Shown here: positions 763-32,918 of the stretch, one piece after another
Numbering within the stretch: the stretch's first letter is position 1
How the letters are laid out: every line of letters starts with the position of its first letter
NCBI GenBank assembly: GCA_965202585.1
Contig: OZ241833.1
Span: 34,286,001-34,350,000 of the forward strand
Source of the DNA: Thalia democratica
Taxonomy: Eukaryota
DNA length: 64,000 nt
Direction: 5' to 3'
The notes under the pieces: model-generated
What the model was told of the DNA's origin: nothing
What the model saw: the letters and a program-made list of their open reading frames with translations, nothing else
Database searches by the model: none
Position numbers and translations under genes: made by a program

Positions 763-1977
763 GCAGTTAAATACTCTGTTAAACATGTATTTAGAAAAAA
801 ATTAAGTAGTTTTTAATATCTGCTTATTAAAATATGAGCATATAAACACTATTAGTTTGTTATTTTCATGCTTCAAAACTTGACTCAAAAAGCCAAGTTA
901 ACTGATTAACGTTGTTTTTTATTTTACAAGTAAGTGTCAACATAACTAACCGTTAAATGCAGCTTAGTTTACAAGCTTTTTACGCACGGAAGACATATTT
1001 CATTTCAGCACAACAAATTAAAAAAAAAGGTAACTTAATAAGTTGAGTGAAATAAAACTATTGTTTATTTTGCAACAGCTAAATTCAAAAAACTAACCAT
1101 CAGACACAGTTTAGTGCCAATTTTTTTCCTCACAAAAAACAACTTATTTTACTTTAGCACAACTGTCTGTTTGCTGTGCGGTAATTCTGGATATCCTAAA
1201 AAGTGTTTACACACGTGCACTCGTACACATGTGCACACAAATCACTTCAGCTGTTGAAGAATTATCTTACACTGTGTAAGTACGTTGGGGATTCAAATGG
1301 AAAAAATACAACAAAATGTATTTTGTTTGATTTTGCAGGTTTTTACAGATTTTTGAATTTTGAGTTTTCAAATGCTTTGACTCCGAGAATCGATTAGATT
1401 TGTTCGGATAACTCTATATATATACTTTTAAATTTAGTTGGAATAAAAAAATTCTTCAAACTGCTAGTTGTTTTACATACAAACGGTTTTACTAGTGTGT
1501 TCCTTTTTGGACAAGTTTAAGAAGTTGAACGTTGAAAAAGCTATTTATTGTTCATAACCATTGTTTGTTATATCTCAAAGTTTGTTTTACAAAATGCTAC
1601 TATACCATCATGGTGTAACCATAACTCAGATTATTTTAATTATAGAATAACTTACTTAGCCTTATAACAAACTAAAAAAGAACAAACCTAAAAGTGCTTT
1701 CTAATACTTATGACAATTATAATAATATTAACGATAAAGTTCTTAGTTATGTTCGTAATATTGTAATATTTTTATGTTACAGTTATATGTTAGTTAAGCT
1801 AAAAACAAAGCAAGAAATGATAAACGCAAATAAACTTTTTAAAAAGCCTTTACCGGTCGTAAATGCGCTATTCATCAAAGCACAGAACAAACATCAGACT
1901 TTTCAATCAGCAGCGCAACAAATCATTTAAGGCGACTTGTGAGAAATTTTCCCTTTGTTTGCTTCGTCAGGTGCGCT

Positions 1978-1992
1978 GGCGACTTCAAGTCT
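1978..1992 (+). promoter_or_regulatory. BMP/Smad response element (Id-1 promoter)
   Basis: GGCGAC-TTCAA-GTCT(G), an exact GRCGNC-N5-GTCT match. Confidence 0.8.
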
Positions 1993-2136
1993 GCTCAATG
2001 CACGTGCAACCTCGAGAAAATTGAAAAAAAAAAAAATTAAGAGATGAAATACGAGATAGCGGGTGGTAATTGGGTGGGATAATGTGAAGAAACAACTCTG
2101 AGAGCTTGGAAGGAAAAAAAAAGGCAGTTTGTCGCG

Positions 2137-2144
2137 CATATAAG
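2137..2144 (+). promoter_or_regulatory. TATA-like box of Id-1
   Basis: CATATAAG about 70 bp before the ATG, conserved in Id-2 (15047..15054, minus). Confidence 0.6.
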
Positions 2145-2213
2145 CGGAGCTGAGCTGCAAAAAATTATTACTTCAAAGTCTGCAGCGGCAAGCACACAAG
2201 CTAAAAACTCAAA

Positions 2214-2510
2214 ATGGTAAAAGCAAGCAAAATAGTATCTTCCAGCGAAAACAAAATCAGCAAAAACTCTTTGGCCATCAAAAAGAACGACGATTTGAAA
2301 GTGAAGGAGACGCTTTCGAAGCTGCAAAATATCCTGCCAAAATGCTGCGATCAAAACATCCTGCCAAAGTGTGGCGATGAAGAGGACCAGCTTGAAATAA
2401 TTCAGCAGGCCATCTACTACATCCGGGACTTGAGCGAGTTGCTGAATAAACCTCAGATCTCAGGAATGAAAAAGATCAGTAATCAGAACATCGTGTCTTC
2501 TCCAGTGTGA
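2214..2510 (+). CDS. Id: Id/emc-like HLH protein lacking a basic region (Id-1, 98 aa)
   Basis: ATG-started ORF. TLSKLQNILP...QLEIIQQAIYYIRDL matches helix 1 and helix 2 of Id/emc (YSKLKELVP...EILQHVIDYI.DL), with no basic region ahead of helix 1. TATA-like CATATAAG about 70 bp upstream. Confidence 0.88.
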   Translation: MVKASKIVSSSENKISKNSLAIKKNDDLKVKETLSKLQNILPKCCDQNILPKCGDEEDQLEIIQQAIYYIRDLSELLNKPQISGMKKISNQNIVSSPV

Positions 2511-2530
2511 AATGCAGAATAACTTACAAG

Positions 2531-2829
2531 GTAAATATTTTATTTTAGATATTAAAAAGTTTAAACTATATACTAAACTTCTTGCGAGGTAAATATTTAT
2601 TTGTTTCACACGTTTTGAGTTGATAGTCAAAAAAGATATCAGCTTTTGATATATTTGTTAAAATATACTTAAGGTTTAATCTGTTTTTAACGTAAAAGTT
2701 AACAAAATATAGTTTAATAAAACATAAAAGTTATTTAAAACTGTATCATTCAAATGATTAGATGTTAAATGAAACACTAAAAATACACTTAATTAAGAAA
2801 CAAGTCACTTATGATGTACAATTTTTCAG
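2531..2829 (+). other. Predicted 3'-UTR intron of Id-1
   Basis: AG|GTAAAT donor 20 nt after the stop and TTTTTCAG acceptor. Similarity to Id-2 stops just after the donor and resumes at the acceptor. AATAAA at about 2976. Confidence 0.75.
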
Positions 2830-5601
2830 ATAAACGGAACAAACTTTGCAACTTTCACAAACTTGCCAGATGGAGCAACCGAAGTTTCGACAAGTTTTTT
2901 CAGCAGCTATGACGTCAAAAACAGCGTAATAAGAAAGTTGTTCGCCGAGTGGAAGCTAGCGCGGAATGAAAACTGAATAAAAATATATGAATTGTTTTTT
3001 GTAGTGTTTTTGAATTGTTGTTTACCATTTTTTTAATGTTACTAAAATATTAATTCTCAAATTTGTGTTTTGTGTTGTTTTTATATACATTATACCTAAG
3101 GTTAAAGTTTAAGGAAATAGCGTAAAACTTACAAAAAAAGTACAGTAAATTAAAGTCAATTTGATAAAAAGAACTAGAAAATTTTGCTTATTCGAGTAAT
3201 AGATTTAAAAAAAGTAAATATACGGAACTTAAAAAAAAGTAAAATTAACACACCTTAAAAAACTAAAAGTAGCGAAGAAAGTTTTTGTTTTAAAACAACA
3301 ACTTTCTAAATAAAAAGCATTCTTAAGACTTTCTCAATTACATAATTAGTCTTAAATTCAAAATTAACAAAATTAAACAAACAATTTATTCAGCTGTGGC
3401 AAAGCGTTTTCTTTGAAAATTTTCAAAAACAAACTCTCAAATATTTATGATTTAACCGTAAACACCTGGAAACATACTTTATGTTTATTCGTTGCAGGTG
3501 TGTGCGTTATGAATTTCAAAGAATTATTTGCTTACTTCGGTCAAACGTATTTTGTTCGTTGTTTGTGAAAAACTTGAAATAACCTTTGAGTGATGATAAT
3601 GTTTTTTAGTATGAAAGGAGAATGTTCTTAAAGCAGTGAAATAAATTTTAAATTTTTTATTTAGCTAAGTATAACTTTATTAAAAGTAAATACAATGTTA
3701 AAGTTGTTTACAAGAATACGAACTTTATCTTATTGTTTTGTTGAACTATCTAATGAGTTTAACTTTGAAGACTCCTAAACATTTATAGTTTTACCTTTAT
3801 TATAGTTAACTTGGAAAAAAAATTATTTCATCTCTAAAACTAAAAGGTTCTCAAAAACAGGCGACTTAGAAGTGATGTAGTCTTTACACTATTTAAATAG
3901 TTATTTTTCTCGAAATTCTGTCTTTACAAAATTCCATGACTACAACTTCATTGTAGAATTATTTTAACTAAAAAAATTTGGACTGTTTTTGAATTGGTTT
4001 ATAGAAGTTGTGTATGAATAATGTAAAAATTTAGTTTCTAAAGAAAATAACAGAAAACATTCAGTCTAATAATAATTAAAGTGAAAGTAAGATGAAAAAT
4101 ATAAAAATTAATTTATTAAGTAACCGTGCAGTACTTTTTGTAGAATAAAAGCATAAAAAAGTAAAATGTTCTACATTCACACCAGTTTTTATTAAAACTG
4201 ATTTTTGTTCAAATTGTAATTACTTGAGTATGCAGTCGAAACTGTTATGCTGGAAAAGAAGTAAAATGGTTAGACGAAGCTGCTGTCTAGTAGATCATTT
4301 ATAACAGCAACGGTAGTAATTACATAACTGAAAGTATTAAGTAAGTTTTTTCACGAAAAAATACAAAAGTTATGTAGTTTTAGACAGAAGTACTTATGTT
4401 TCGTTAACCTTAATTTTGTAAAGTTTTAAAGTAATTCAGTATATTAAAACAATTTAAAACTCTAATAAAAATTATGTAAAGTTGCTGTGTTTAAATAACT
4501 CAATAGTTTATATAAGTTTTAAATGCTTTCTTATTTGAGCTTACATACTTTTTGTATCTTCAGGGGTTAAATATTTCTAAACATTAAAAAAAATGCTACT
4601 AATAAAAATGTGTAGTAGTAAAGTTTAAAACGTTTAAACTTAATAGTTGAATAAGCTTTAAAAGTATGTTAAGTCAATAATCCAATAGAAATAACAAATG
4701 TAACTAACTTCGATTAATTAACAACTTTTCCTCAGAACTATTAAGATAAAAATTATACGAAATTACTCTGTTTTTCAAGTATTAAAGCGTTATAAAACCT
4801 TAAATCAATCTTTTAAACCTTGTTTTTTTATTCATCTGTGTAAAAAGAAACTTAGAACATTTTTTAGAGTGCATTATCGGAGTATACTACATTCATTTTT
4901 TTTCTTATTCAACACTTTTTAGATCTGTTTTAGCTTATTCAACAAAACTTTAAAACTATATTGTTAAAAATGTTCAAGTTTTTAAAAACTTTGAAATAAT
5001 AAAAAAGAGTTTATAAATAACTCTTTTGAACAGTTACTTTCAAAATTTTTAAAGTACTGTGTTTAAAACTTTTAGTATATACTGTTAGTATACAAAATTT
5101 CGGTAACTTCTTATAAATTGTTCGGACATAAAAACTAAAAATACCATTTTCATAAAGCTGCAACAACAAAACAGTTTAAAAATAGGTAGCAATTTTATTC
5201 TACAAAACAAAACACGACTATACTTTAACTGTAGTGCTATTCTTTATTGTTTAAAGTTACTTTGATTTATTTTAAACTTAAATTTTTCAAAATTAAAACA
5301 ATAATGTAACTTAACTATATAAAGTTTTATAATTTTAATTGACTCTTTAATTGTCTAAAAATGTATTTACAAACTTGTTTAAAACTTGTTCTACAACACA
5401 TCAAATAATAAACATATTTTGTTAAAAGAAAAAAATTGTATGCAGTTTTATATAGAATTTTACTTTTTTTTTAAACTGCTCAACGACCTCTTAATTTAGC
5501 GAGGCAACAGTAAATTTTAAAAAGAATCATCTTTCAATGTTTTTTGTCGTTCACGGAAGAAGCGTGAAAGGGAAAAATTAAACTTTTGTTCAAACTTTTG
5601 C

Positions 5602-5755
5602 CATTAGCTTAATTTATAATACATTTATGCACATGTTCGTACGAAGGCAGACTTGTAGGCGCCGTAACACCTGGGTTAAAGTGAAAAACAAATACTATGA
5701 AAGTAGTGAAAAGTATATGAGTGAGGAGCTGAAATGAGGAAAAATTGTTGCGCTG
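5602..5755. repeat. Triplicated BRE-containing element, copy A
   Basis: About 100 bp identical to copies B and C. Contains AGAC-TTGTA-GGCGCC (5649..5663) and CACCTG (5668..5673). Confidence 0.9.
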
Positions 5756-8700
5756 AAAAAAGAGAGTTGAGAAAGTTTGTTGCTTTAAAGCGAAAATTAT
5801 ACATTAGAAATTGTTTTACTGTTTTTTGAAATCATTGGAAATTTTTGGCAGGAATAATTTAAGTCTTTTAGCATTTTAGTTGTTGTACACTTTTAAAGAA
5901 AAAAAAGTAAGATTTTCGAATTTTCAACGAAGAGGTCATATAACATTTCGTGACAAAATCAAAAAGACTATTAGTAGTTATATAACTTTTTCACTTTTAA
6001 TTTTTGTAGTTTCAAATGTAATTTAAATTTTGATAACTATCTTGCAAAATCTTAATGAGAAGCTAAGAAATGAATTTTAATAACGGTAGCTTTTTATAAA
6101 GTTAAACATAAAAACTATTAAAGATGTTTACTTGACCACATTAAACGACATGTTATATAAATTAAAAAGAACGTGAATAAATATTTTTTTTCGAAATTTT
6201 TGATATGAGAAGAAAACGTGAAGCTAATAAAAGTACTACGTTCAATTTGTCCATATTTATACTTTTTCCTCAACGCTTTAATTTGTTACAAAGAAAGGAT
6301 TTGTTCCTAAAAAACAAAGCCAAATCTTACATAAAAAAAATATGTTTAGTATACTTTTTTGTAGGAACTAAAAGTCTATTTCTATTGCTTTGTAATAAAT
6401 TAAACCGAAAACTTTTGAAATTATAGACGAGCTGTAGTACCTTTATGCTAACCAAAATATCTAAAAAAGTACCTTATACCAGCAGTTTTTAGTGTTTAAA
6501 ATAAGAATATTTACAAAAGTAAGATGCCAAGAAAAACTGTAAGTATATATGAATTAAAAAACGCGTTTAATTTTAATGGTTTTACACTAGAAAGTTATTT
6601 TTGAAACTGTAAATATTAAAAAAAAAAACTTTTTATAAATGTAGTTTAAGTTTTTGGTTTGATTTGAAGTTTGTTTGATTATAATAGAGGTAATTATTGT
6701 TTATCAAATAGACTTTATTAAAATAAAACTCAGTTGTAATAACCTATATTTCTGTTAAGAATATCATAAGCATGCTTATTTAAAAAAATATATCTGTACA
6801 ACTAAAATAAAAAAGCTATCACCAACTGTTTACTATTTAAACTCAAAACAGCAATCAAAACGAAACATAGACGTTTATAACATGAGAAAAAAAACCACTT
6901 CTTGAATTGTGGACTAAAAACACAATTAAACTCTAAACTTTTATCAACACAAAAGTTTTAAATACTATTTAGTTATCTTGAAGCCTTTTATTCGTCGTCA
7001 GCGAAAATTAAATACTCAAAGTACACAAGCATTAAACTTTAATTATTTTAAACAGGTATGTTTTTTTACAGCTTAGAGACTTTTCTATCGGCTCATTTTA
7101 CTTCAGCCAGTAGCTTAATTTGTTTTGCTCGTTAACTAATTCGTGAAATGCTTTTTACTAAATTCCTACGATTTGTGTTCATTAAAACCCATGACTATAA
7201 ATTTATTTAAATTCAACTTATACGACCTGAGTTTTTGCCAAATATCAAGTAACTTGAAAGCTTAAATTTTACCGACTCTTAAAATATAAAATGGCATTAA
7301 CAGTTGTCCTTTTAATGTCCTTTTAATATATATATATATATTTATTTAAGTTTAACCAATTAAGAGAAATGCTGAGTTTTTAACAACGACTTCTCAATTT
7401 CTATCGACTCACTTTAGTTTAACTTATTAAATAAAAAAAAGTTATCATTTAATATAACTTAATATAAAACACAATACACAAACCCGTGAAAACTTTCTTA
7501 AAATTTAAATCTTATTAAAACAGCTTGCTAATCTTGCAGTTGTAAAATTTAAAGTAATTTATACATTAAGTATTCTTGTTTGTTATATGAGCTACAGAAA
7601 ACTAATTAAAACGTTCGCGGCGGTCAATAACCCGTTTAACTGTGATGTAAGCTCAACCGTTATTAACTTCTCAGAGGTTTGGAAATATGTCAGGTGCGGA
7701 ACAGAAATTAAACTTTACCTGACCTTCCGAGAACAGCTGCGGCCTAATTGTTATCTTTGCATTTCTACACAGCGTAATCTGCGAGCATTTTCGCTTTGAT
7801 TTTTCATGAAATCTCAATGTTTTTTGCACAAAGCCGTGGTGTAGGTTAATCTGACGACTTTATTGCGGGCGTCTTGCTGCCCGAGATACGAGATAAGCTT
7901 TATTAGCGCATTTTATTGTTTGGTTGCTTTTTGATTAACTGAGCGAGTAATAAACGCCAGATAACTTTATAAAGAAGTCGTTTTTAGTGTTTTCTGCTGT
8001 AAAATTTGTCTTGTGATAAGATAAACTTTATTCGAAGTTTTATTATAATTTTTTATACCAACACATAAAACTTTAAAAAGTCAATATTAAAGTTTTCTTT
8101 AGATAAAGTTGTGTAAATAATGAAAGTTTGCAAAATAAGATATTATCATTTGAATTTTAATAAACAATGAACTTCACCGCACGACCAACAACACATAGAA
8201 GTTTTTGGTGTCAATATTAAAGCATTATGTAGATAAACTCCTAGATTTAATAATATCTTTTGAGTTTTGTAACTTAAATTTGATAGAGCGCGGTAAATGA
8301 AAAAAAAAAGTTTTAATGAAGTTTGTTGTGCTGTTGTAAGTTAATTGTATTTTTTATTAGTAAAAAAGTTAACCATTTTACCTTTCAACAGCTTTTTTTT
8401 TGTAAACATTTTGCAGTAGATCGTTTCTATAACAGTCGTATAAAATAAACAATAAGTACTAGAAAACATTTTTTCCTAATAAATACCAAAATTTAAAAAC
8501 GGTTTGTGATACAGCTAATTATTTATTAAGTTACTTTTTATTTGACAATTAGTATTTATTTGATAATTTTATTTTTTGTAAGAATTGCATAAAAACATGC
8601 AGTACACTTGTTACGTCAGTATAAAGAGTCATCTCATGCGTACAAATAAATATTTTACCGGCAAACTAAAACTGAAAAAAAAAGAAAAGTTTTCATAAAA

Positions 8701-9434
8701 CCATAAAGTGTATTTTTGCATGAAACTTGTCAAAAGTGAGGGTGAACAGTGTAAAAGGAAAGGACACTTTTTACTGTATAAGAAAGTTCACAAATGACAT
8801 GTTTTATTGAGCTATTTTCACGGGTAGTGATAAATTGGACTACTTGTTGATTGAAATGATAAAGTAAGGAGTTTGAATACAAGTTTTAAACTTAAAGAAT
8901 TTACGATTAGTTTGATGCCAAAAGTTTAAAATTCTAAACACGATAACAAAATAAAAATTTGAATGGATATTTTGATAGCGAAATGTCGGGGTGTTTATAT
9001 AGTAATTCGTTTATAAAGTAATATATATATATATATATATAATTATCATGCGTTATTATTATTATCATGCGTTTTTAAAGCAATTACGGCTTAATTTATG
9101 TGTATTATGTACAAAAACTTTGTTTTGTTAACAAGCAACAAAAATTTGTACTTTATGATTTATGTTTATTATGACATTTAAACTTCATATGTATAGTTTT
9201 TACCGAATTATATAAACCTTTTAAAATATTTATAATTATTTCAAATGCTTACCTGCAAAGCATATCTTTTGTTTTTTCAGTTTAACAAAAAAATGTCCGA
9301 ATAACCAAAATTTTCAATCAAATAAAAAACCCTAAAACCCTTATTGTCAGTTTCATTAGCTTTGGTGGCTTTGCAAACTTTTCATCAAACTTAAGGTGGT
9401 CTCTTCTTTTAACAAAGGTCTAAGCTCGCACACA

Positions 9435-9585
9435 CATTAGCTTAATTTATAATACATTTATGCACATGTTCGTACGAAGGCAGACTTGTAGGCGCCGTAA
9501 CACCTGGGTTAAAGTGAAAAACAAATACTATGAAGGTAGTGAAAAATATTAGTGGGGAGCTGAAATGAGGAAATTTGTTGCGCTG
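9435..9585. repeat. Triplicated BRE-containing element, copy B
   Basis: Direct repeat of copy A. BRE at 9482..9496. Confidence 0.9.
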
Positions 9586-10659
9586 CTAAGAGCAAACGGT
9601 TGAAGCTTATTTGGTTTGGAAACAAACTTTCAATAAACACGGATCTGCTTTGTTTTATCAGCTGAAATTTTAAGGAACACGACAGTTTGACGATTTAATT
9701 TTCACTAGTTTTGTCTTATTAGTTTATTTTCAAATGTGTTTTTGTTTTCAATAGATTGAAAAAAAATTGTGGACGTTACATATTAACTGTTTATTGTTTT
9801 ATTTTTATAGCAAACCAAAATACTTATTTACTGAAATTGTTTGTATAAGAACATTTTTGAAACAGTCATACTGGTCTTTGTTTCTTGTTTTCATCATTGT
9901 TACTCCTTCGCATATGGTTTAATTATTAACAGTAAGCGATCTGGTTGTTATGAATGACAGTTCTTGTACTGCAAAGTTAAATGTCGTAAAGTACTACTTG
10001 GTACACTATAATTAGAATAGATCTGGAAATTAAATAAGGTGAATTAAAAAAAAAAAAGGTTGTTTGTTGCTACTTTGAAAATTAGCTCCTAAAAATAGAC
10101 TATAAAAAGTTTGAACACAAAAGATATAGTTTATTCTAACAGCCATAACAGCTGTGAGCTGTAATTTAAAACAGTTTTACTTATTAATTATTAATGAATA
10201 GGTATCAATAGTATGGTATTATTATAAATATTTTTGAACGCACTTGACGATTTTTAATAAAAAATAATTGTCCACTAATTAATCTATGCAACAGAAAATA
10301 TATTTTACGCAGATACATACCAAGAATATATAAGTTTTCAGTTTATTGTTATAAGTATTGATAGTCTCGTAAAAGCAAAAATTTTGGATTAAAATTTTTT
10401 GGACTGTATAAAAAGTTATAAAAAAACGTAAATTCAGAATTAGCAGTTTACTATACAAAATAAATTAAAAAACTTTAGTTTTTCTTATTTTACTATGATA
10501 AAAGTAATTTTTAAACGTTGACAACAAAAATCGCGAGGCTAAAAAAAGCAACAAAACAACAACAGCGTCGTTTCGAAATTAAATTTAGCAACAAGAAACC
10601 CAATATAGAACAAAATTTAACGCGAAATCGCTTTTTGATGGTCAAGGGCGAAACATCAG

Positions 10660-10750
10660 CTCGCGCAGGTGAGCTTCAGATCCGCGTATCTAATTGGCAG
10701 ACATCAGGGCGCCTCGGAACACCTGCGAGCTTGCAATTATGACGTCACAA
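10660..10750. promoter_or_regulatory. Putative enhancer: BRE, two E-boxes and a CRE
   Basis: CAGGTG at about 10666, AGAC-ATCAG-GGCGCC 10699..10713, CACCTG 10720..10725 and TGACGTCA 10740..10747, all inside a GC-rich island. Confidence 0.65.
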
Positions 10751-13685
10751 AGACCTGTATGCAGCTTCGTGCTCCTTGGAAAGTCGCATTCTGGATTAAA
10801 AAGAACTTTTCCAGGGCTCCCATCACGGTTTCAACGCGTCGCGCTAATGGAGATCGGATCTTTGTAATTACACGTTTCCCGCCTAAACACGTCATAGTAG
10901 CTGGGAGTAGCGTTTTTATTTTGTTGTTGATATGGGTCTTCAGCTGCGTACTAATGTGTGCAGAAGTTGGAACAGTATCTTAAAAACAAATTTAAAAGCT
11001 TTTTTATGTTAATAATTGAGAATACTTTGTGAATTAAGTACAATCATTATAAGTTTTTTTGTAGCGTTCGAAGTAAACAGTCTAGCAATTAGAAACTATT
11101 AACAAAAAGTAATGATTTGAAAAGTATAGCTGTAAATAAAAATCATAAAGATTTTTATTTTCAAGAATATACCAATAAACTTATAGATATGACTAATATA
11201 CAAAATACAGTCTACATTTACAATTTAACCTTCTTTTATGCCGTGAATATTACCTAAATTTTATAGGTTTCTTGTAGCATTTTCAAACAGTTCCACTATA
11301 AAAAACTACTTTGAAATGATAAAGTGAACTAAATTTAGACGTTTTTTGAAAAATAGCTAAACTTAAAATTCCGAAAAACTTACTTTTATTACAAATAAAA
11401 CATTTTCTGAAACGGAATCCAAATTAACAATAAAATATAGAAAAACAAAGCAAGTTATAAAAATGTTGTAAACAGTTATTTCAGTGTAATAAAAAGGTAA
11501 TTTATTTTAATTGTATAAAAGTTTTTATACAAAAGTTAGAGATAATAATTGCCTTAAAATTTTGCCAATAACATTCTTTTGTGTACAGCTCGAAAATCAA
11601 ATAATTTAAATTGCATTTTGAAGTATTTACTCAGATTTGCCATAAATTAAAAACTAACACCTGCGCTCTGGAGAAACTTATTAACAACTTGAAGGGTAAA
11701 AATAAATCACGATGCTCACCGCATTCACCATATTTTAAATATTTTGATGAGCGTGTAATTGCGCGTTTCAACAACACAGTTGATACACAACTTTCAAGGG
11801 AAAGAATATTCAATTTGCGGTGCAGAGTGTTGTCATATGTGCGAGTTGTGCTCTGGTGCAAGGTCTGCCTTCGTTCGAAATCAATCTAAATTAAAGCTGT
11901 CTCCCTGTTTGAAACAATTCTAATTTAAAAGTGTTTTTCTTCAGCTAAACCAAGCGCGCAGCTTTTTCTTCTCGGCCGCAATTCCGAATATCAAAGCAGC
12001 ACACTTCAGAAAAAACGAAAACTTGTAATTACAACGCACATGTGTTTCAATGCCCGCAAACAGCTGCGCATAGAAAAAAAAAACTGAGTTTGGAAAAGTT
12101 TTAAATAAAAAGGTTTAAAACTACATTATGACGTAACTGTGCAGGTGCTTTGAAACTGCTGCTGCTGTTGTGTCAGCTGCGAGATCACATAAGCAGCCAC
12201 TATCATTTGAAACAAATGGCAGTTAAGTATACAAAGTTTTGCATTTTTAATGTTTCAGCATTTTGTGCGAAGAGTAAAAAAAAGTGAATTTAAAGCTTGT
12301 AAGTTTAGAGATGTAATAATGGAAAAAAAATCTAGGGTGAGCTAAAATGATTGGGTGCAGCAAGCATCGTTCGTAAAACAAAAAAGTGATTAAGAAATTA
12401 TAGTAACATTTATGACAGTAATGGAAATAAAGTATACAAAGATCATTCTAAACGTTTCAGCGTTCAGAGACCTGTGAAAGTTTTAAGTGAAATTTAAGCT
12501 GATAAGTTTAGCAGGTTCAAAAATGAGTATTAGCCCAATTGGTCGGGTGTAACATATATCGTTCGTAAATTAAATGATAGATAAAAAATGTTAAATAAGT
12601 TCTAATCACATTTGATATATTATTTTACATTTTAGAGAATACGCTAAAACTAATGTTAATGGATTTCCGAAACCTTAAAGTTGTGTTTTAAAATGTGATT
12701 AGAATTACGACAATAAAACCCAATATTTAACATAAAGTCGTATTCCACTTTAAAGCATTTTTATGCTTATTTTTATTCTTATACTTTAAATAACAACGTT
12801 TTGTGTTAAATATTAAGTTTTATTGTTTTGATTTAACAATACTATTTTAATTCTGCTTGAAATTTATTTTAAAGTAAAATACTTATACGAAATATCTCTA
12901 GTTTAGTTAATTGAAACTATCAAGATGTGATTTATCAAGTTACTTTAGGTCTAAATTAAATGTAGGATTATTTGAAACTTTTATTTTGTGCTTTTTTTCA
13001 ACGTTGATATATTATAGCAGTTTTGGCAAAAAACTGTATTTAAAGCACTTGATAATTTTAGTAGTTGAAAATACTACATAAGAAGTACTTAATGGAACTA
13101 CCAAAAAGTAAAACACTTAGGCTCATCTATACAACTTTTTTATTATTTATTAGTTTAGGAATAGACACTACACATTCAAACTAGTACCTAAAATTTCACT
13201 AAAATAGCACAAAAAAAAGGTATTGCGCTATCATAATATTTTCGTACATACCTGTATGAATATAAAATTTTTATACAAGTCTATAACCATAGTAAGTCTT
13301 TAACAAAATTTATTTAATGTTTAAATGTAAGGTTGTAAGAATAGCTGATCTAGTTTCTGTTTAAATTTCAGTTTTCTTCAAATTATCGACTAGGAACAAA
13401 AAACTAAAAAAAAAACCTCATACGCGCCTATGTAAACATATTTACATGTTTTGTAAACGTTAACAAAAAAATAATGTTTTAAAGTTATAATGAAAAAATT
13501 TATTAAAATTTTAAGTATTTTCTTAAATACTTTTTACAAATTATTATAAACCAAACTTTGAAACAAAAAGTTTTATAATCTTTTATACACCTTAATCAAA
13601 CTTTTTCAAATTAAACGTTGAAGCGCAACAGCTAACTTAAATTTAAATCATTATGTAAAACGTTTTTAAATTTCTTAATGCTTTC

Positions 13686-13778
13686 TATTTAGACATTTAT
13701 AAACTTAATAATAAAAAAAAAGGAAAATTTTTTATTTAGACATTTATAAACTTAATAATAAAAAAAAAGGAAAATTTT
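13686..13778. repeat. 47-bp tandem duplication (x2)
   Basis: TATTTAGACATTTATAAACTTAATAATAAAAAAAAAGGAAAATTTT repeated. Confidence 0.85.
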
Positions 13779-14408
13779 CTAATACTATTTATTATTATTT
13801 TAGTTCTTTTTATGGTTATACCAAAAGGTAGAATAAAAAAAAATACTTTGCCTTTTAAAGTTAAATTTTTTCAGCGTATTTTGTCCTATGTTTTAAAAAT
13901 CGAATATTATTTTGGCTTTAAATGGTAGCTACTACTTAGCTTTAGTTATTATGATAAAGGTAAGTAAAGTTGCATCTCTTAGTTGAGTAAATTTGTAGCA
14001 ATCGTTTTAAACAACGAAATCCTGAGTTATTTTTCAATTCTATTTTAAACAAGTTTTCCGAGCAAGTCATCAAAAAGCTTAATTCGAAGATAAATTAAAA
14101 AAAAAAAATTCAGCTTCTTTTTAGTAAAATACTACAAAATATAAATTTTTATACTAACAAAATTTTATATTACATAAAAATAAAAGTTGTTTTTAACATA
14201 GTTTAATCACAACAAAAAGTTATGAAAACACACAAAAAAATCAACAAATAGAATTTTTTCTTCAGTTTTCAGCCCGCGCTAGCTTCCACTCGGCGAACAA
14301 CTTTCTTATTACGCTGTTTGTGACGTCATAGCTGCTGAAAAAACTCGTGGAAAGTTTAGCTGCTCCATCAGGCAAGTTTGTGAAAGTTGCAAAGTTCGTT
14401 TCAATTGT

Positions 14409-14660
14409 CTGAAAAATGAAAAATCATAAATGACATGTTTCATAACTAAATGCTTTTTTTGGTTTGTTGAAAAATACAAAGACTTCAACGATACAACTTT
14501 AACGTGTCTTTAATTTTAATTTTTTTTTTAAATGGTTTTAGTAACAATACAACAAATTTTAAGTTATAATTCAGTAAATGTATCAAAGGTTTAAATAATA
14601 TCATAAACTACTAATTGAACAATTTCAATACTGAAATAGCTGCAATAAAGTAATATTTAC
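14409..14660 (-). other. Predicted 3'-UTR intron of Id-2
   Basis: GAG|GTAAAT donor 19 nt after the stop and TTTTTCAG acceptor. The following exon (14408 to about 14262) aligns with Id-1 2830..2976. Confidence 0.75.
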
Positions 14661-14679
14661 CTCATAGTTATTTTGCATT

Positions 14680-14976
14680 TCACACTGGAGACGACACGAT
14701 GTTCTGATTACTGATCTTCTTCATTCCTGAAATCTGAGGTTTATTCAGCAACTCGCTCAAGTCCCGGATGTAGTAGATGGCCTGCTGAATTATTTCAAGC
14801 TGGTCCCCTTCATCGCCACACTTTGGCAGGATGTTTTGATCGCAGCATTTTGGCAGGATATTTTGCAGCTTCGAAAGCGTCTCCTTCACTTTCAAATCGT
14901 CGTTCTTTTTGATGGCCAAAGAGTTTTTGCTGATTTTGTTTTCGCTGGTTGATACTGCTTTGCTTGCTTTCACCAT
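14680..14976 (-). CDS. Id: Id/emc-like HLH protein (Id-2, 98 aa), inverted paralogue of Id-1
   Basis: 9 nucleotide differences from Id-1 over 297 nt by manual comparison. Same promoter and TATA-like box. Confidence 0.88.
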   Translation of the reverse strand: MVKASKAVSTSENKISKNSLAIKKNDDLKVKETLSKLQNILPKCCDQNILPKCGDEGDQLEIIQQAIYYIRDLSELLNKPQISGMKKISNQNIVSSPV

Positions 14977-15193
14977 TTTGAGTTTTTAGCTTGTGTGCTT
15001 GCTGCTACAGACTTTGAAGTAATAATTTTTTCTTGGCCCTGCTCCGCTTATATGCGCGACAAACCGCCTTTTTTACTTCCAAGCTCTCAGAGTTGTTTCT
15101 TTACATTATCCCACCCAATTACCACCCGCTATCTCGTATTTCATCTTTTTTAATTTTTTTTTCAATTTTCTCGAGGTTGCACGTGCATCGAGC

Positions 15194-15346
15194 AGACTTG
15201 AAGTCGCCAGCGCACCTGATTTGCAAGCAAACAATGAAGATTTTCAATGAAGATTTCTCCAGACTGGCTGGCGCCCCGCACCTGCAGCGAAAAGCGAAGA
15301 TTTTTTTTTGGTGAGAAAAATTTTCGCAGCCAGACTTGAAGTCGCC
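15194..15346 (-). promoter_or_regulatory. Triple BRE array (Id-2 promoter)
   Basis: Exact elements at 15194..15208, 15261..15275 and 15332..15346. GTGAGAA at 15311..15317. Confidence 0.8.
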
Positions 15347-23600: not shown

Positions 23601-24413
23601 GTTCTGATGTAGGTGTAGCTAAAACTTACGTTTTAAAATATTTATTAAACAAGTATTGGTTTAAAACATACCGCACTATTCTATAACAAAATATTTTAAG
23701 TTATGAAAACTAAGAAATTTTTCTAGAATGTTTCTACATTTAAAAAAAAATTAAAACCAACTTACATTTGATTAAAAGCACAAAAATTTAATCTAGTTTT
23801 AAAACAGCGTGTGATAGTTTTCTAAGCTAAACTATTTTAATTTGAAAATAAATTCAGCTAAATGATTATTAATACAAGGCAGCTGTGAATTATTTTTTGT
23901 GAATAATTTTACAAAGTAAATATATCCAATTTAGCTCATGATAGATTGCTGACATTTTCTTAGAATTACAACTAAAATATTAAAAACACTTCGGCAGGTG
24001 TGCAATTCTTATTGCAGAATAAGTATTTTTTTGCTAAAATTTCCTCTAAACCATTTTTATCTACAACTTTTTTGTTATTAAAATTCAGCCGATTTACGGA
24101 GCGGTACCTGCATCAGTAATCTTCTTAATGTTGTTATATTAACGGACATAATAAGAACGGCTGTTTTATAGTAACGGTACGATCTAGTACAACAGTAGTT
24201 TTATTCACTGTTGATTAAAAAAAAAAACCCGTCTTAATACATTTTGTTATTAAATTTATTTTTAAAGCTTCTGTCAAAGCTTTTGTTCTTACATTAAACT
24301 TTATAATTTTTGGAGGAAAATCATAAAACAAACGAACGCCTTTGAATACGTTTAAGGAAAATATCATCAAATCTTCACAGATAACCAGATTTATTTAATT
24401 CAGCTTCGCAACT

Positions 24414-24633
24414 TGGCGACTTCAAGTCTGGCTGCGAAAATTTTTCTCACCAAAAAAAATCTTCGCTTTTCGCTGCAGGTGCGGGGCGCCAGCCAGTCTG
24501 GAGAAACCTTCATTGAAAATCTTCATTGTTTGTTTGCAAATCAGGTGCGCTGGCGACTTCAAGTCTGCACTTGCACGTGCAACCTCGAGAAAATTGAAAA
24601 AGAGATGAAGTAAGAGATAGCGGGTGGTAATTG
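24414..24633 (+). promoter_or_regulatory. Orphan copy of the Id-2 promoter with three BREs and no downstream ORF
   Basis: About 220 bp closely matching the reverse complement of 15113..15348. BREs at 24415..24429, 24485..24499 and 24552..24566. Confidence 0.85.
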
Positions 24634-27600
24634 TGAGCGGGGGGTGGGGGGGGGGAGAAATGTCGCCGAGGAAAGTTGCGAACGTTGAAAGCGGAATCGC
24701 TTAAATGAGTTGAAGTTTACGGTAAATAAAGTTTATTCGTATGCTGTGAATAAAGTAATAAAACAAAAAGCTGAAGCCGATATTGTTTGAGTAAGTGTCA
24801 GGTGTTTACTGCAAGTGCGCTCCAATGATAAGTTTGTAAATTGAAGAGCTAGTTGTTTGTGCCTATTCGGTAAGGTGGTATGATTGGTTAGGACAAAAGT
24901 TTTTGATAAGTAACATAAAATTTGCACCTCCCTAATTCATTACTGTTTGGTAAAAAATATTAGAAATAAGTGAAAAAAAAATTCTGCTTACAATAAAAAT
25001 AAAAACAAAAAACGACATTAGTTAAAATGTTTTTTATGTAAAACAAATACGTTTAGAAACTAAAGTACTAGTGTCTAAACAAATATAGAAACTATTTTCT
25101 TCGAAAATAAAATACTAAAATACAAGTTATGCCTTCTGACAATTAAACTTTTATTGAGACTTTTTAGAAATATTGCAGTTATAATCAACTTAAAGCTTCA
25201 ACGTACTCTACAATAGCTAAGGTGGTGAATACTTAAAATATATTTTAATGTAAATTTTTTTTAGAAGTACAAGTTTAAAACATACATCATTAAATTACAT
25301 AGAAAACAGTACATCACAGCCTGTTACTGTTTAATAAAAAAAATACTTTACGTTTTTTAAACATAATTAAATGAAACTTTGAATTAAAAAAAAGCTCATT
25401 ATAATCCGTTTTTATATAGTGTCTAAAAACATGTGGAGTAAGTAGGTAAACTAGATCTATATATCGTATCACGAAAAACGAATGAAAAGGCATGCAAAAC
25501 TAGTTTAAATTAAGAATTTATGTTTTTAAAACGTTTAAAAGCAAAGTTTTATGTTTGAATTTCAGCTTACAGTAGACCATGTGTCTTTTATACAAGTACT
25601 TTAAGTTAAAAAAAAAAACAGTACTTAACGTTTTATATTTATATAAAAAAGTTTTGATAACAGTTTAGTTTAAAAAAAACTTTAGTAAAAAAAATATTTT
25701 TTTAAAGTGTAGTAGGTAAACAGAAATTTTCAAAACTTCTACATGGTTATTTAAAAGCGGTTTTAAAACAAAAAAAAGTTGTAGTAAATTTGTACAGTCT
25801 GAACGAGTTTTGCGTTTTGTATTTAAATAAAAATAATACATAATGTTTTACAAAGTTAAAAAAACTGCTTAGCAATAAACCTTAAAATTTTAGCTAAATA
25901 AACGTGACAAAAAAGTATTTAATAGAATAATTAAGGAGACAGACAAATATTTTATAGTAATTTAGTAATGACAATTTCAAATAGTTTATCAACAAATAAA
26001 CAAAACTAACCATATAAAGCTCGCTATTTGAGTGCAACTCGAAAATATATAACCTGATACAAAAAAAAATCTGATTTTTACATTCTGATAAATTTTAATA
26101 ACGGCAAAGGCAAAAGGGCACGAACCATCTGCGACCACGGCTATCCGATGACATACTTTTCAAAAGCGCACTTAATTGAGCGTTTTACAACTCAAAAAAA
26201 AAACCAACAGATCGCTTTATTATCACAGCCGAAAAAAAGCCGCTCCGGCGTGGGAGTTTGCGCGAAAAGATACTTTTTCATGTCCACGCGTATGCACATC
26301 ACAAAAGCGGCCGCTTTTCGAAAGACCTGAGCCCTCAAAGCCTCGAAATTCGCTCCCATTGTTTGCCCACGTGCAGCAAGGGAAACCTCAGGTGCTCCGG
26401 CTAAACTCCTGACCCGAGCCAGCTGCGCGAATTATTGTTATTGTTCGAATGCGCTGTTTGCTCTTTGAATCGCGCATCCTCCGTCTTTTGTTTCGACGCC
26501 GAATAAACTGTTTGTTTGCTTTTCTGATAACGGGCTTACGCACGCCGGCAAAAGGCGCTTCGTTGCTTTGAATTTGTATACGCTGTTTTGAAAGTTTTGT
26601 TTTGAAAAAATGCTACAAAGAAACTATATCCGACAGTTTTTAACTGACAGTGTTTAGTTTTTAAATTTATATTTTGTTTTGGAAGTTTTCATTATGATAA
26701 AAGCTAGTGCTACGACTACGTTTGTATTAAAATAAAATGATAAAAAATGAGCAGATAGAGAAGTAATATATACTAAATAAAAGTCATTTATTAGAAAGTA
26801 AGTAAGTAAAATAGGCATTTTATGAAACTGGTAATCTTGATAAATATGTCAAAGTTTTTGAAATCAATAAAAAAGTTTCTCACTTAGTTTTAAAACTTGT
26901 CTTAAATTAAAACAACTCTAAAGTATTTTTGATAGTTTAAGAATATATTTTGAAGCAGATTAAAAAATTTACATCTTTTAATCTACCGGCTGGTTACACT
27001 AACTTTTTTTATTCAAAATTTCAGATTGTTGAACTAGGTTTATTTTACTTTTAACTTTTTTCGATAAGATTAGTTACAAATACTTAGAGATGTTTGTATT
27101 CATGACTTATGTACACGTAGTTTAATGTAATGAATTATTAAACTTTCAATCTAATAAAAAATAAGTTTTGCAAATTAAGACCTTAGAAAAACTACGTGGA
27201 ACTCTGTTATTAGCTTGATACAGAGAAACGTGCATCAGTCCAACAAATTGAACTGTTGTCATAATATTCCAACGAACTTGTTTCGTTCGAATTTCTGTTA
27301 AACATGTAGTTTTAGCAATTAGTACTATGTGAACTTTGGTAAACTAAATCCTAATGTTTTGTTAAGTTTGTGTTTATTTTGTGAAAAGTAGCATGTTAAA
27401 AGCTAATTTGTTTTATCTTAATAAATTTTATACTATCTTAACTTTATATTAAAATACTTAAATGTCTATAATTAACCAGTCAAAGAAAGAAAATATTTTA
27501 AGTAGTACTGCATTTAATTTACCCTAGAAAACCTTTTGTGGAAGTTTGTTAAATATTGTTATATATAACAATAACATGAACAGTTTTCTAAAAATTATTT

Positions 27601-30110
27601 AAAGCAGATCTCAGCGTTAATTTTCAAATAACAACGGCAACGAAAAAACTATCAAAGTTGCGAAGCAATATTTGCTAACTGCTTCAAATTACCGACAATT
27701 GCTTGCATAAATGACACAAATTCTATTTTTATTAAATTTCCAACTGATAATGGCCGTCTGAAATGTTTCACAAGTGTGAAAATTAGATTAATGGAAAGTA
27801 GGTTACCGCATAAAACAACTTTCAATAATCGATTATTTACAGTCAATTATATTTTGAAAAAATTACTGGTAACTACGTCATCTAATCTTTGCAGCTTTGG
27901 TGTTTTTAAACATGGACAAAATTTACTGGCAAGTTGCTCGAAAAGTGCTAATGTTTATTCTTTTTAAAGTTATAAAACGCTTAAAAAACTTTGAAAACTG
28001 TAAAAAAACATTTTTATTGAAGGTTAGCAGTAATATAATTAGTTATTAAAAGTTTGTTACCTTATTACTTTTGAATGTTTTAAGTTCGGTTATATGACAA
28101 CATTTGGTAGAGAATTTTTTTAATTTTTACCTTGAAAAAGGTTAAAGTTGGTAAAAAAACTAAACAAGAGTATAAACATTCTCAATAAAAAGTTCAGTAT
28201 TATTTAAAGAATTTAAACTCACAATCACTTAAATTAAATATTGTGAAACTTTAAAAAAAGAATTACCAATATGTTTCTTACTTTAAGTTTTGTCGTACTT
28301 TTAGTTTATAAACTTACGACTGAAGTTTTGTTGTTTAAAACAATTTTAAAAACTGTATGTCACTTATTTAGATTAACAATGATGGCACAAACTTTCAAAA
28401 TTGTTTGAATATACTTTTTAAGAGAAAAGCTCCGTCATACACTACTATTAAAAATATTTTGTTCAAACAGTTCTTTTATTTACTTTTTGATTTACGTGAA
28501 CTAAATGAACACCAAAGGCTTTTAGCTTAGTTTAATTGTACATTGCTTACAATTTATTCGATTGTCAAGTTTTTTACCGAACTGGTTAATCAAACTATGA
28601 TAAACTGCAGCGACGCCTAGCTGTTATTTTTATTTAAAACGCTTGACAACAATATTTACGCTGTTCTGTAATATTTCAATTACACTAGTTTTAATAACTA
28701 GTTTTGCAAACTTTGAAGTAGATAACTTCAAGGATGAAAACATGGTATTATCAACAAAACGATCACTTTAAAGAATCAAATTACTTTTAAATCAAAAATT
28801 ATAAATATTTTCTACACAGAATGTTTCTATCAGCTGTATGGTTAATTTTGAGTTGCTGAACATAAGTAGTCAAGTATAACAAAAGTCAAACTTATTTATG
28901 TGCTTTATAAATACTTTCAAGTCACATAAGTTCCGATACTTTTATTCCGACCAATCTTTATAAAAAATTTACATAATTTATAATTTCAACTTAAAAAAAA
29001 ATTTAGACTAAGACTTTTTATACGTAGTAAAAAAGTACTCATTGTTAAAAAAATTAAATGTTTCATTTTGAAAATATCTGTTCTCAAAAACTTAAATTCA
29101 AGTATACACAGTTTAAATTAGATGTTTATTTATTTTTATGACTTATTGTTTAAAAAAAATATATTTCACTTTTATTAAATAAACTCTTGTTAGATTTCGA
29201 TGAACAAGAACCGGTTTTTAACAAAAAAGTATTATTTATCGAAAAAATTTTAAGACTAAAGAACTAAAGTTCAAAGCATAACCTTTTATTTAATGTGAAT
29301 TTCATAAAAATATTTTCATATTTTAGAAAAATAATACTCTGTAAATACTAAAATATCAAGTTAATCAAACAAAGACCGTTGATTAATGCAAAGTATTTGT
29401 TACCTTAATTGACATTTAAATTAGAAAAGGTTAAAGGAGTATTTGTCATTTAGTAATTAGCTCAATGAAAAAAAAAAAATAAATATAGTTTTAATCAATA
29501 AAAAGGTTAAATATTTATATTATTAACACAAAACTACAAGTTTAAAAAATTAGTTTAGTAAAAAGTGTGTTTTTATTAGTCTGTATTATGTACTAACTAA
29601 CATGTTTTAATTACTTAGTAATTTATAAAAAGGTTCTGATTATTAAACTTAATAAAAGTGTTTGCCATTATTTTTTTCTAAAGTTAACTAACTCTAGTAA
29701 TAATTAGTCATTTCATTTACTTCGAGTTAAAGTCGTAATCGCTTATTTTATTTTGAAATATTTGTAAAAATTCGTTCTTCTTTAAAACTTACTAAAATAC
29801 TAACAGGTTTAAATTTTCAAACTTTTTGTTAAAATAGTTATATGAAAATGTACGCTTTAAAACTATAGCTACAAACTATAAAATAGTGTATTCCATTACC
29901 AACATCTAATATTAAACTTTATGGCAATTTAACATTTATAGTACTAATCAAAACCTGATTTTTAGTTTGTCAAAAAAGGTCAACAAAACAAATTTTAAAA
30001 TAAAAACTTGTTACAGGCGCATATTTGCCCATGCAAGCTTTAACGACTTAAAAAAACGTGTTTTGTACAAGAAAGTCGGCAAACAAAAAACTTTTTGAAA
30101 TTTTTCTGCC

Positions 30111-30125
30111 AGACTTTACGGCGCC
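30111..30125 (-). promoter_or_regulatory. BRE 1.3 kb downstream of the divergent HLH gene
   Basis: AGAC-TTTAC-GGCGCC, an exact match. Confidence 0.6.
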
Positions 30126-31442
30126 TGCGAAGACAAATTAAAAGTTAATATGCTTTTACGTTATATAAAAAAATTGTGTCAACGTCCAGTGATAAACCAT
30201 GCTCAAACGAAAATTTACGATAATAATTTTTAGCTTTATCTATATATTTATTATTTACAAATTTTAAATGTTTTGAATTTATAATTTGACTGTTGAAAGA
30301 TACAAAAACTTTTCAAAGATTATTTCTGTAAAGTTTAAGCTTTGCTATTTTTGTTAAATTTAGTTTTAACACCAACATAAGGTAAATATATTAACATGAA
30401 ATAAAACATTAGAAATAAAGTAGAGATTTATAATTATATTTTTTCAAAAGTATTTAAATACATACTTTGAAAATTTGTTATAAACTTGTAAAAAAATTAT
30501 AAAGACTAGTTTAGTTTTTAAGCATCTTACTTATTTTTAAATATGTAAAAGTACCATGTATTTGTTTGCTATTATGCTTTTATAGTTAAGAAAACTTGCT
30601 TTTAAAACTTGTTAAGTTCAAATTTTTGGCTTTGTTAGATGTAATTTTGTATATAATCGTAAAATTTTGTTCGATAAAAGTTAAAACCAGCAAAAGTTAG
30701 TGATACATTTAAGTTATAATCTGTAAATCAAAAAGTTTGTGAACTTTTAAATCTTTAAAACTTATTTCTTTAAGTATTTTACTAACGAACTACAAATATT
30801 CATCATCATTCATCTTATAACACTTGAAAGTTATGCTAAAAAAATTTAGTACGTTTCTTTAAAAAATATAACTAATCTATCAAAATATATTTATACATGA
30901 ATAAAATTTGAACAAAACGTTTTATTTGAAAACAGTAGATAAGCAATAAAAAGTTTTGAGTTTTTTGTAAAACAATTTGCACAGTGTAAGGAAGCAAATC
31001 TATAAAAAAGTTATAAATAATTTTCAAAATAAAAAAATTCTCACTAAAATGCAGTTAATTCTGAAAACATTTTTAAATAGTGATTATTACTTTTTCGAAA
31101 CTACTAGAAGCTAAAAAAGTTGAACTTTTTCACAACGTAGTAAAATTTCTTTCAACTTGAAACTGGCTTACAGCTTTACAAGTACCGTAAAAAGAAGACT
31201 ACAAAAGCAGAACTAAACTATAAAAAAAAACTTTAAGCCTTTTCATTTTCAGTTCTTAAACTTTAATTTCACGTTAACATGATGAGTTTCTAAAACTAAA
31301 TAACATATTGAAGTTTAAGAGTTTAAAAAACAATTCAATTCGGTTTTTTCAAATTTGAATTTCACGATAAAACTCGAGTATAAAAAAAAAAACTAAACGC
31401 ATGTAAAAAGTTTTTGGGCAGTGACGTCATAACACCGTAGCT

Positions 31443-31742
31443 TCACCTCCGTCCGACCGTCCGCCCCTCGTCGTCGATGTTGACGAAGCAGTGTGACGTC
31501 ACAGTCCTCTTGCTCTCGTCACTGTTTCTTATGACGTCGTGCAGCAGCTTTATGTAGGCGGTGACGTCGCGCAAAACGGTGACGCAATCGCGCTCCGAAG
31601 CGACGTCACGACTTCTGGCGGGGACCAGCTCCCTGAGGTCGTCGAGCAAGTCCATCACCGCTCTGACGTCATTTTGTGAGTCTTTCGTGACGTCACGGTT
31701 GGTTTCGGACAAAATGCTGACGTCACTAGTTTGGATGCTCAT
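31443..31742 (-). CDS. Divergent basic-less HLH protein, Id/emc-like (99 aa from the first ATG)
   Basis: VMDLLDDLRELVP...CVTVLRDVTAYIKLLH fits the HLH helix 1/helix 2 pattern and there is no basic region. GC-rich ORF in AT-rich DNA. The track ORF starts at a TTG (31775); the first ATG is at 31742. Confidence 0.75.
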   Translation of the reverse strand: MSIQTSDVSILSETNRDVTKDSQNDVRAVMDLLDDLRELVPARSRDVASERDCVTVLRDVTAYIKLLHDVIRNSDESKRTVTSHCFVNIDDEGRTVGRR

Positions 31743-31767
31743 TGAATTTTTTGTTAAATTAATTAAC

Positions 31768-31831
31768 CTGAACAATCGGTAAATTTTTGTTTAAAAGTTA
31801 GTTACTTGTTGTTGTTTATATTTGTATTTAC
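31768..31831 (-). other. Predicted 64-bp 5'-UTR intron of the divergent HLH gene
   Basis: On the minus strand: AG|GTAAAT donor, TAACTAAC branch-like motif, and TTGTTCAG acceptor 25 nt before the ATG. Confidence 0.55.
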
Positions 31832-32890
31832 CTAAACAGATACAGATTATCTAGTATTATCTATTTGTTTGTTTTCTTATCTAAAAGTGATTTCGTTTAA
31901 TAGTTATGTAAATTAAAAATGTTGCATACTAGTATAGTAATAATAACCATGCATTTATGAAACATCTATTGTACTTTATTATTTACAATAATCTAAAAAA
32001 CTGAAAAAATCATAAATGCTTAATGTTTGCTCTAAAACAAACGTTTATTAAAGGGCTTCCTTTTATATACATATATAAGTTTATTCAAAGCAAAGTTAAG
32101 CAAACTTAATGTTTTTTACTATAAATAAAATGAAACATTTTTTAAATATTATTAAACGTATAAAAAAGAACTATTAAAGATCAAATTGATTTATTTAAGC
32201 TTCAATAAACCTTTACTTAAAAAATTTTTTAAGTCAAAATTGTGTACTAAATTTCTTTAAACCTTTAGTATAAAAATTATAAAGTAAAACATAAACTTTT
32301 ACGCTTATACTTAAAAAAAAAACAAAAAGCTTTAATAACTGAAATAACTCTCAAGTAACTCTAAAAGCTTTTTATACAACATAACAGTTTTAAGAAGACG
32401 CTCTCTAAAAATAATTTTATAAATAACAAAAACTTCCATTTTAGAGTAATGATTCTGTTTTCTTACAACTTGACCTACCATTGCGCCATTAAGTATTTAA
32501 TACATTGTATGGTAAACATGTTTTCTTTGTAACGAAACTAAAAATGCTCATTTAGCTGTCACGTAAAAATCTTAATTTTTGTCAGGAATGATTTAATTAC
32601 TTGCAAATTGTCTGTAATAAAAGTCAACAAAATCTAAACAAAACTGTATTTGTTTTTATAGCTTTTATAGTTTTCTTCATTAAAAAAATGTATTTTTTTT
32701 TGTTTATAAATCACTAACTTAAAAAGTTGAAATAAAATTCAAAGTTAAAAAATAAAAAAAACATTATTTTATCTTAATGTGTCGTGCTCCTCTCGAAGCG
32801 TCCAAACCCGACTGGTTCCGTTGGTAACAAAATTAAATTTTATTTGAAAGTTTTTTTTTTTATTTGAATGTTTCTTTCCTTCTGATTGCT

Positions 32891-32918
32891 CAGGTGCGAG
32901 CCAGGCGCCTCGGTGTCT
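32891..32918 (+). promoter_or_regulatory. E-box plus BRE 1.2 kb upstream of the divergent HLH gene
   Basis: CAGGTG-CGAGCCA-GGCGCC-TCGGT-GTCTG. Confidence 0.7.

Follow-up and report, generated by a model that had tools for sequence, protein, structure and literature searches.

The stretch of DNA analysed here (henceforth the window: 64,000 nucleotides of Thalia democratica, positions 34,286,001 to 34,350,000 of contig OZ241833.1) is AT-rich (27% GC, no N). It contains three short Id-like helix-loop-helix (HLH) genes, an orphan copy of an Id promoter and one divergent HLH gene, and this work concerns the bone morphogenetic protein (BMP) response elements (BREs) spread among them, most of which have an E-box of sequence CAGGTG lying directly beside the Smad-binding part. 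The open reading frames (ORFs) of Id-1 (2214–2510, plus strand) and Id-2 (14680–14976, minus strand) each encode 98 amino acids and that of Id-3 (48156–48389, minus strand) 77, while the divergent HLH ORF (31443–31775, minus strand) sits between the BREs called types F and G below. The Id-like proteins have the HLH but no basic region. Searches of Pfam HLH and of PDB with single Id protein sequences gave only scores below threshold. A profile of the family compared with all solved structures returned ID-1, ID-2 and ID-3 as its top matches (E 0.001–0.008), above every DNA-binding bHLH, and it is on this ground that we call the window genes Id-like. Near relatives of the window Id proteins are present in Tara Oceans metagenomes, and within the window the paralogous Id promoters have been homogenised. 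Id genes are classic BMP targets.

A strict search for GRCGNC-N5-GTCT retrieved 17 exact matches in the window, and no variants with N4 or N6 spacing were present. The base that follows GTCT is G in all 17, at a background G frequency of about 13%, so that each one reads GTCTG. The full string GRCGNC-N5-GTCTG is the Schnurri-competent (Schnurri-recruiting) form of the Drosophila silencer element. The hexamer GGCGCC occurs nine times (0.5 expected in shuffles), in every case inside a BRE, and none of the eleven GGCGAC hexamers outside BREs has an adjacent E-box. The Smad part of these elements is that of the published 5-bp composite BRE (GC-SBE-N5-SBE, where SBE stands for Smad-binding element; ID-like in vertebrates; GRCGNC-N5-GTCTG in the fly), with a GC box of the GRCGNC form, for which GGCGCC is preferred, exactly 5 bp between GC box and GTCTG, and the terminal G, in 17 of 17 copies (PMC3203580, PMC11907993). 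By comparing flanks and merging paralogous copies we reduced the 17 copies to eight independent families (A, B, C, D, E, F, G and I); the distal element of Id-3, at first set apart as type H, was merged with type C, the distal element of Id-2 and of the orphan promoter, because their 3' flanks are homologous.

CAGGTG is found 29 times in the window, against 6.1 ± 2.4 in dinucleotide shuffles, and it stands beside 12 of the 17 BRE copies, in five of the eight families (A, B, D, E and G). In all of these composites it is on the BRE strand and 5' of the GC box, that is, always on the receptor-Smad side, with a spacer of 4 bp in type A, 3 in B, 4 in D, 6 in E and 7 in G. At this slot beside the window BREs we found no flipped CACCTG, no CAGCTG and no CACGTG, and the box was never on the GTCT side. 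Among the 6-mers that recur in the 30 bp upstream of the BRE families, CAGGTG is the only GC-containing one, the others being AT-rich background. Measured from centre to centre, the E-box is 9–13 bp from the GC box and the GC box 10 bp from GTCT. The spacing is therefore about one helical turn and places all three boxes on the same side of the double helix.

The type A composite (CAGGTG-4-GGCGAC-N5-GTCTG) occupies 1968–1993 in the Id-1 promoter (plus strand), 15193–15218 in that of Id-2 (minus), 24542–24567 in the orphan promoter (plus) and 48591–48616 in that of Id-3 (minus). Type B (CAGGTG-3-GGCGCC-N5-GTCTG) is found in the promoters of Id-2 (15260–15284, minus) and Id-3 (48658–48682, minus) and in the orphan promoter (24476–24500, plus). 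Type D (CAGGTG-4-GGCGCC-N5-GTCTG) belongs to a triplicated element of 115–130 nt, with copies at 5648–5673 and 9481–9506 on the minus strand and at 44748–44773 on the plus strand. Type E forms part of a larger module (10666–10747, minus strand) in which, reading along the minus strand, TGACGTCA (10740–10747) is followed after 14 nt by CAGGTG-6-GGCGCC-N5-GTCTG (10698–10725) and, 26 nt further on, by an inverted E-box, CACCTG (10666–10671). Type G (32891–32919, plus strand; CAGGTG-7-GGCGCC-N5-GTCTG) lies about 1.1 kb upstream of the divergent HLH gene. The families that lack the E-box are C, with its distal BREs in Id-2 (15331–15346, minus), in the orphan promoter (24415–24430, plus) and, as positional equivalent, in Id-3 (48762–48777, minus); I, upstream of Id-3 (48973–48988, minus); and F (30110–30125, minus), 1.3 kb 3' of the divergent HLH gene and kept in L180, a contig of a relative that carries the divergent HLH gene and ends about 200 bp short of the position of type G.

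A first-pass annotation of this DNA, made by reading the sequence, had already pointed to the recurrence. The strings and coordinates it gave are all present, and its count of five among eight independent BRE types, all in the same orientation and 3–7 bp away on the GC-box side, was reproduced with 12 copies and none flipped. Two details needed correction: the span it gave ended at 32918, whereas instances extend to 48682, and the five contexts, which it regarded as unrelated, are so only in part. Types D, E and G do have flanks unrelated to one another and to the promoters, but all the instances belong to one Id cluster, and the type A and type B composites occur next to each other in shared promoters, at a distance of 66 bp.

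Eight families are few, and so the arrangement might in principle be due to chance, or be an artefact of composition in the GC-richer islands of an AT-rich genome. Random placement of 22 independent CAGGTG sites, scored for five of eight families with a box, gave P = 3e-14 for the observed slot. Even under a very loose null, in which the box could fall on either side and either strand at 0–9 bp and all sites were crowded into 5% of the window, P was 1e-3, a value that ignores the use by all families of the same one of four configurations; over increasingly generous nulls P went from 3e-14 to 7e-3. Viral contigs, used as a chance control for the composite pattern, had no orientation bias (15 CAGGTG versus 13 CACCTG). 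When metagenome contigs were scanned for E-box(CASSTG)-3..7-GGCGCC-N5-GTCTG, at least 118 stretches matched, nearly all of them GC-rich and bacterial-like, and among the matches listed the three of lower GC content resembled coding DNA. Together with the status of CAGGTG as sole recurrent non-AT 6-mer and the conservation of the arrangement at a distant locus of 50% GC (L183, see below), the P values and the viral control leave a chance origin hardly any credibility; it is already refuted by the placement and slot tests.

Metagenome contigs encoding near relatives of the Id proteins (L001–L004) carry the type A element, and an alignment of eight promoters from the window clade has a block without variation whose first base is exactly the C of CAGGTG and which extends to the end of GTCTG; invariance resumes a few bases on at CACGTG. 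In type A of the most diverged near relative (L002, 63% protein identity) and in type B of L003, substitutions fall only in the spacer between E-box and GC box and in N5. A profile search recovered three much more distant Id-like loci, L181 (34% protein identity, 37% GC), L182 (33%, 35% GC) and L183 (44%, the locus at 50% GC). All three share the promoter layout of the window, which in L181 and L182 opens with a distal BRE without an E-box. Next come, at each locus, CAGGTG-4-GGCGCC-N5-GTCTG, a second unit about 120 bp further along, CAGGTG-4 or 6-GGCGAC-N5-GTCTC/GTCGC, and then CACGTG and a TATA box. The spacers of these units have new sequences, with lengths of 4 and 6. L181 has in addition a CAGGTG-6-GACGCC-N5-GTCGCC 1.9 kb 3' of its Id-like gene, a unit that we rejected as an orthologue of type E since the flanks fail to align.

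Across the lineages, variable columns amounted to 0 of 12 in the E-box, 0 of 12 in the GC box, 2 of 10 in the Smad4 box (SBE), 8 of 10 in N5 and 24 of 24 in the 12 bp 5' of the E-box (Fisher test of E-box versus non-motif columns, 2e-9). Conservation of the E-box therefore equals that of the receptor-Smad site and exceeds that of the Smad4 site. Distal BREs, too, have stayed free of an E-box. Of the interpretation given by the first-pass annotation, the composite E-box/Smad grammar is thus supported, with its fixed side and orientation and a distance of 3–7 bp: it is statistically solid in the window and has been kept in four Id-like lineages whose flanks and spacers have fully diverged. For type E the comparison was with a close relative and ocean metagenomes, about 4–5% diverged (contigs about 95–96% identical), and of the differences listed a single one touches the composite, at 10705 in N5.

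Several side observations concern the same promoters. Each lineage has a CACGTG after its proximal (type A) element: it is present in L001–L004, L181–L184 and the four window copies, the last located at 2001–2006 (7 nt 3' of the Id-1 element), 15180–15185 (Id-2), 24574–24579 (orphan) and 48578–48583 (Id-3). Its distance from GTCTG is 6–9 nt in the window clade and roughly 25–60 nt in L181–L183, and L184 starts at CACGTG. With this hexamer the Id proximal promoter has a conserved class-B E-box, a site of the Myc/USF/Hes type. In the distant relatives (L182:9725–9741, L183:479–495 and L181:12270–12286) the Smad4 box of the proximal element is replaced by an inverted GC box, which yields GGCGAC-N5-GTCGCC, a palindromic pair of receptor-Smad sites, with the E-box retained. 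A further motif, GCACCTTTGAAC (a CACCT half-site overlapping a TCF-like CTTTGAA), lies about 20 nt 3' of the type B element in L181 (9629–9642) and L182 (9636–9649); it is absent from the window promoters.

Could one ancestral unit of E-box and BRE simply have been copied round the Id cluster, the E-box being kept for an independent input and not for any coupling to Smads? All the instances are in Id clusters, types A and B adjoin and both start with CAGGTGCG, the paralogous promoters have been homogenised, and a shared origin of the 26-nt cores is possible. However, D, E and G have no flanking sequence in common, and the spacers differ both in length and in sequence. Without coupling, the E-box would be expected to shift in distance, change sides and flip, and none of the 19 copies in the four lineages shows such drift; side, direction and narrow distance are kept in 19 of 19. 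Conservation extends to the distal BRE, which has remained without an E-box. Mere copying is accordingly an account to which we attach only a small probability. The composite of E-box and BRE is, from comparison of sequences, very probably real and under selection.

Because side, direction and narrow distance are kept while the intervening letters vary freely, we infer that CAGGTG is the site of a partner protein of the Smads, a role that we consider rather likely. The element would consist, in order, of an E2-box, a Smad1/5 GC box (GGCGCC or GGCGAC) and a Smad4 box (GTCTG). The BMP-activated Smad complex on the Id BRE would then act jointly with a protein bound beside the receptor-Smad, and the output of the Id genes would be set by two inputs instead of BMP alone, whereas the BREs without an E-box (C/H, F and I) may serve as plain BMP sensors.

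As the reader of CAGGTG we tentatively favour a dimer of class-I bHLH proteins (E-proteins) acting within a negative-feedback loop, although the chances of this particular assignment fall somewhat short of even. Id proteins titrate, and so inhibit, E-proteins, and it is on this account that a self-limiting circuit, the feedback of the first-pass annotation, is proposed: the more free E-protein there is, the more strongly Id would be induced, until the accumulating Id turned its own induction off. At the locus CAGCTG (32 in the window versus 4.8 expected) and CAGGTG (29 versus 5.9) are 5–7 fold enriched, and CAGATG and CATATG (12 versus 8.8 each) are not, so that both forms of the class-I E2-box CAGSTG are in use and CADATG is not. 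E-proteins are known to prefer CAGSTG over CADATG (PMC8829030), and in both flies and mammals there is mutual regulation between E-protein genes and Id genes (PMC5915177). Elsewhere in the window, CAGGTG and CAGCTG occur together in about nine clusters free of BREs (e.g. 7691–7739, 12061–12179, 26368–26425, 37285–37555 and 52714–52740). CAGCTGCG is found at 9 of the 32 CAGCTG sites and CAGGTGCG is also recurrent; both represent an extended E-box with a CG 3' flank in a CG-poor genome, a flank that CAGGTG and CAGCTG sites often have in common.

A different reader could be a zinc-finger repressor of E2-boxes (Snail/Scratch or ZEB/Zfh1), which, sitting beside or on the Smad complex, would veto or reshape the BMP response of the Id genes in particular cells, with no feedback sensitive to Id. 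The slot holds only the asymmetric CAGGTG and in one direction, as a polar zinc finger would produce, and the base after CAGGTG is always C or T. Snail1 binds Smad3/4, its repression being enhanced by a Smad element near the E-box, and ZEB1/2 bind Smads too (PMC6616578); the targets of Zeb2 include Id1 and Id2, and E-boxes occur near Smad motifs in Zeb2 targets (PMC10048071). ZEB prefers two CACCT(G) boxes per target, and two E2-boxes are indeed found in the promoters with A and B (66–125 bp apart) and around type E, but types D and G carry a single one. The equally strong enrichment of CAGCTG cannot come from Snail or ZEB, and the ZEB-type CAGGTA is not enriched in the window. Furthermore, the published partnerships of Snail1 with Smad3/4 and of ZEB (SIP1) with Smads, in which a CAGGTG reader likewise cooperates with DNA-bound Smads, rely on Smad sites of TGF-beta type, loosely spaced (about 100 bp) and with no fixed orientation, and not a BMP 5-bp composite at 3–7 bp (PMC6616578, PMC10048071); the Smad part in the window is of BMP type, neither CAGA nor GTCTAGAC. 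We regard such a repressor as a close rival of the E-protein, if less likely than not, and leave a smaller share to some other reader. Three other readings of the hexamer were rejected on sequence: a T-box half-site (AGGTGTGA), given that types A, B and G read AGGTGCG, a Zelda site (CAGGTAG) and a splice donor.

The composite resembles a number of known systems without coinciding with any of them. The published 5-bp composite BRE is bipartite and the window form has a third box abutting the GC box; E-boxes go unmentioned in both the ChIP-seq motif study and the 2025 composite-motif study (PMC3203580, PMC11907993). The cross-regulation of Da with Emc and of TCF3 with ID3 follows the same loop logic, the E-protein driving its own inhibitor, but a composite with a BRE is not described there and in flies the control is mostly post-translational (PMC5915177). 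E-proteins also appear as DNA-bound Smad partners in the system of HEB/E2A with SMAD2/3 and FOXH1, although this belongs to the Nodal branch, with FoxH1. HEB and E2A were reportedly presented as SMAD2/3–FOXH1 cofactors by Yoon et al. in 2011. The first-pass annotation had not recognised the element as a described one, and in the open-access literature we came across no report of a BMP-type composite with CAGGTG directly beside it, which does not imply that none exists elsewhere; what is known are the looser partnerships of Snail1 with Smad3/4, ZEB with Smads and HEB/E2A with Smad2/3.

The nearest counterpart in position is Bicore1 (Clarke et al. 2012), an Id enhancer conserved among bilaterians in which Smad, E2F and ATF sites keep a fixed order, orientation and spacing, with ATF/cAMP response element (CRE) and E2F sites but no E-box, and which was reported as undetectable in tunicates (PMC3410860). 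In the zebrafish copy 7 bp separate the ATF site TGACGTCA from the GGCGCC-N5-GTCTG 3' of it, which puts the ATF site into the same slot as the E-box of the window (PMC3410860). Like Bicore1, the window elements adjoin Id genes, all of them being in the Id-like cluster. They do not have TGACGTCA a few bp 5' of the BRE, nor the colinear order Smad-E2F-ATF-Smad: in type E the TGACGTCA is 26 bp from the GC box and not 7, with the E-box between them, and types A, B, D and G are without it. Since this defining CRE geometry is lacking, we have not filed the window element as Bicore1. Type E may be a diverged remnant of it, the order of CRE and then BRE being that of the 3' half of Bicore1. As an observation apart, TGACGTCA occurs nine times in the window versus 0.4 expected (e.g. 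2910, 14321, 31422–31725 and 59166); five of the nine are inside the divergent HLH coding sequence, and one each is in the conserved regions 3' of Id-1 and Id-2.

Taken as a whole, the statement that CAGGTG is the third box of a tripartite Smad-partner cis-element, with an E-protein favoured as its predicted reader, stands in our estimation slightly above even chances. Several points weigh against it. All instances are at Id-type loci, and the composite may have been inherited within this gene family instead of reflecting a grammar of general use. The box in the slot, uniformly asymmetric and never CAGCTG, would suit a polar zinc finger such as Snail or ZEB no less than it suits a bHLH dimer. 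With a spacer of only 3 bp the E-box protein and the Smad might exclude each other instead of cooperating, and for types D, E and G the comparison reaches no deeper than a relative about 95% identical. In Drosophila, moreover, a homeostatic feedback between Da and Emc was predicted and not borne out, uniform transcription of emc being sufficient for most patterning (PMC5915177). A bolder version would make CAGGTG the docking site of a dedicated partner in a stereospecific ternary complex with pSmad1/5 and Smad4, a partner that in pelagic tunicates took over the ATF/CRE slot of Bicore1, with the Id genes as coincidence detectors of BMP and free E-protein under negative feedback and the same syntax at other BMP targets throughout the genome; this we hold to be unlikely.

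As far as its sequence can tell, the composite E-box/BMP element is very probably real and selected, and it bears on a standing question in BMP signalling, how specific outputs are obtained from few Smad sites of low affinity. Partner sites with strict syntax have been proposed as an answer, and few are defined at base-pair resolution; here an element of 26–29 nt has three invariant boxes and free spacers. BREs with and without the E-box, side by side in one promoter and conserved over deep divergence, amount to a natural experiment. The element also bears on whether Id genes sense the activity of the proteins that they inhibit, and on the fate of the ancient Id enhancer Bicore1 in tunicates, from which it had been reported missing.

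Away from the Id cluster's regulatory elements, the window also includes an ORF of 192 amino acids for a RING-H2 protein (zf-RING_2; 60287–60865, minus strand), which has many unnamed homologues in ocean metagenomes and an N-terminal coiled region conserved only in patches.

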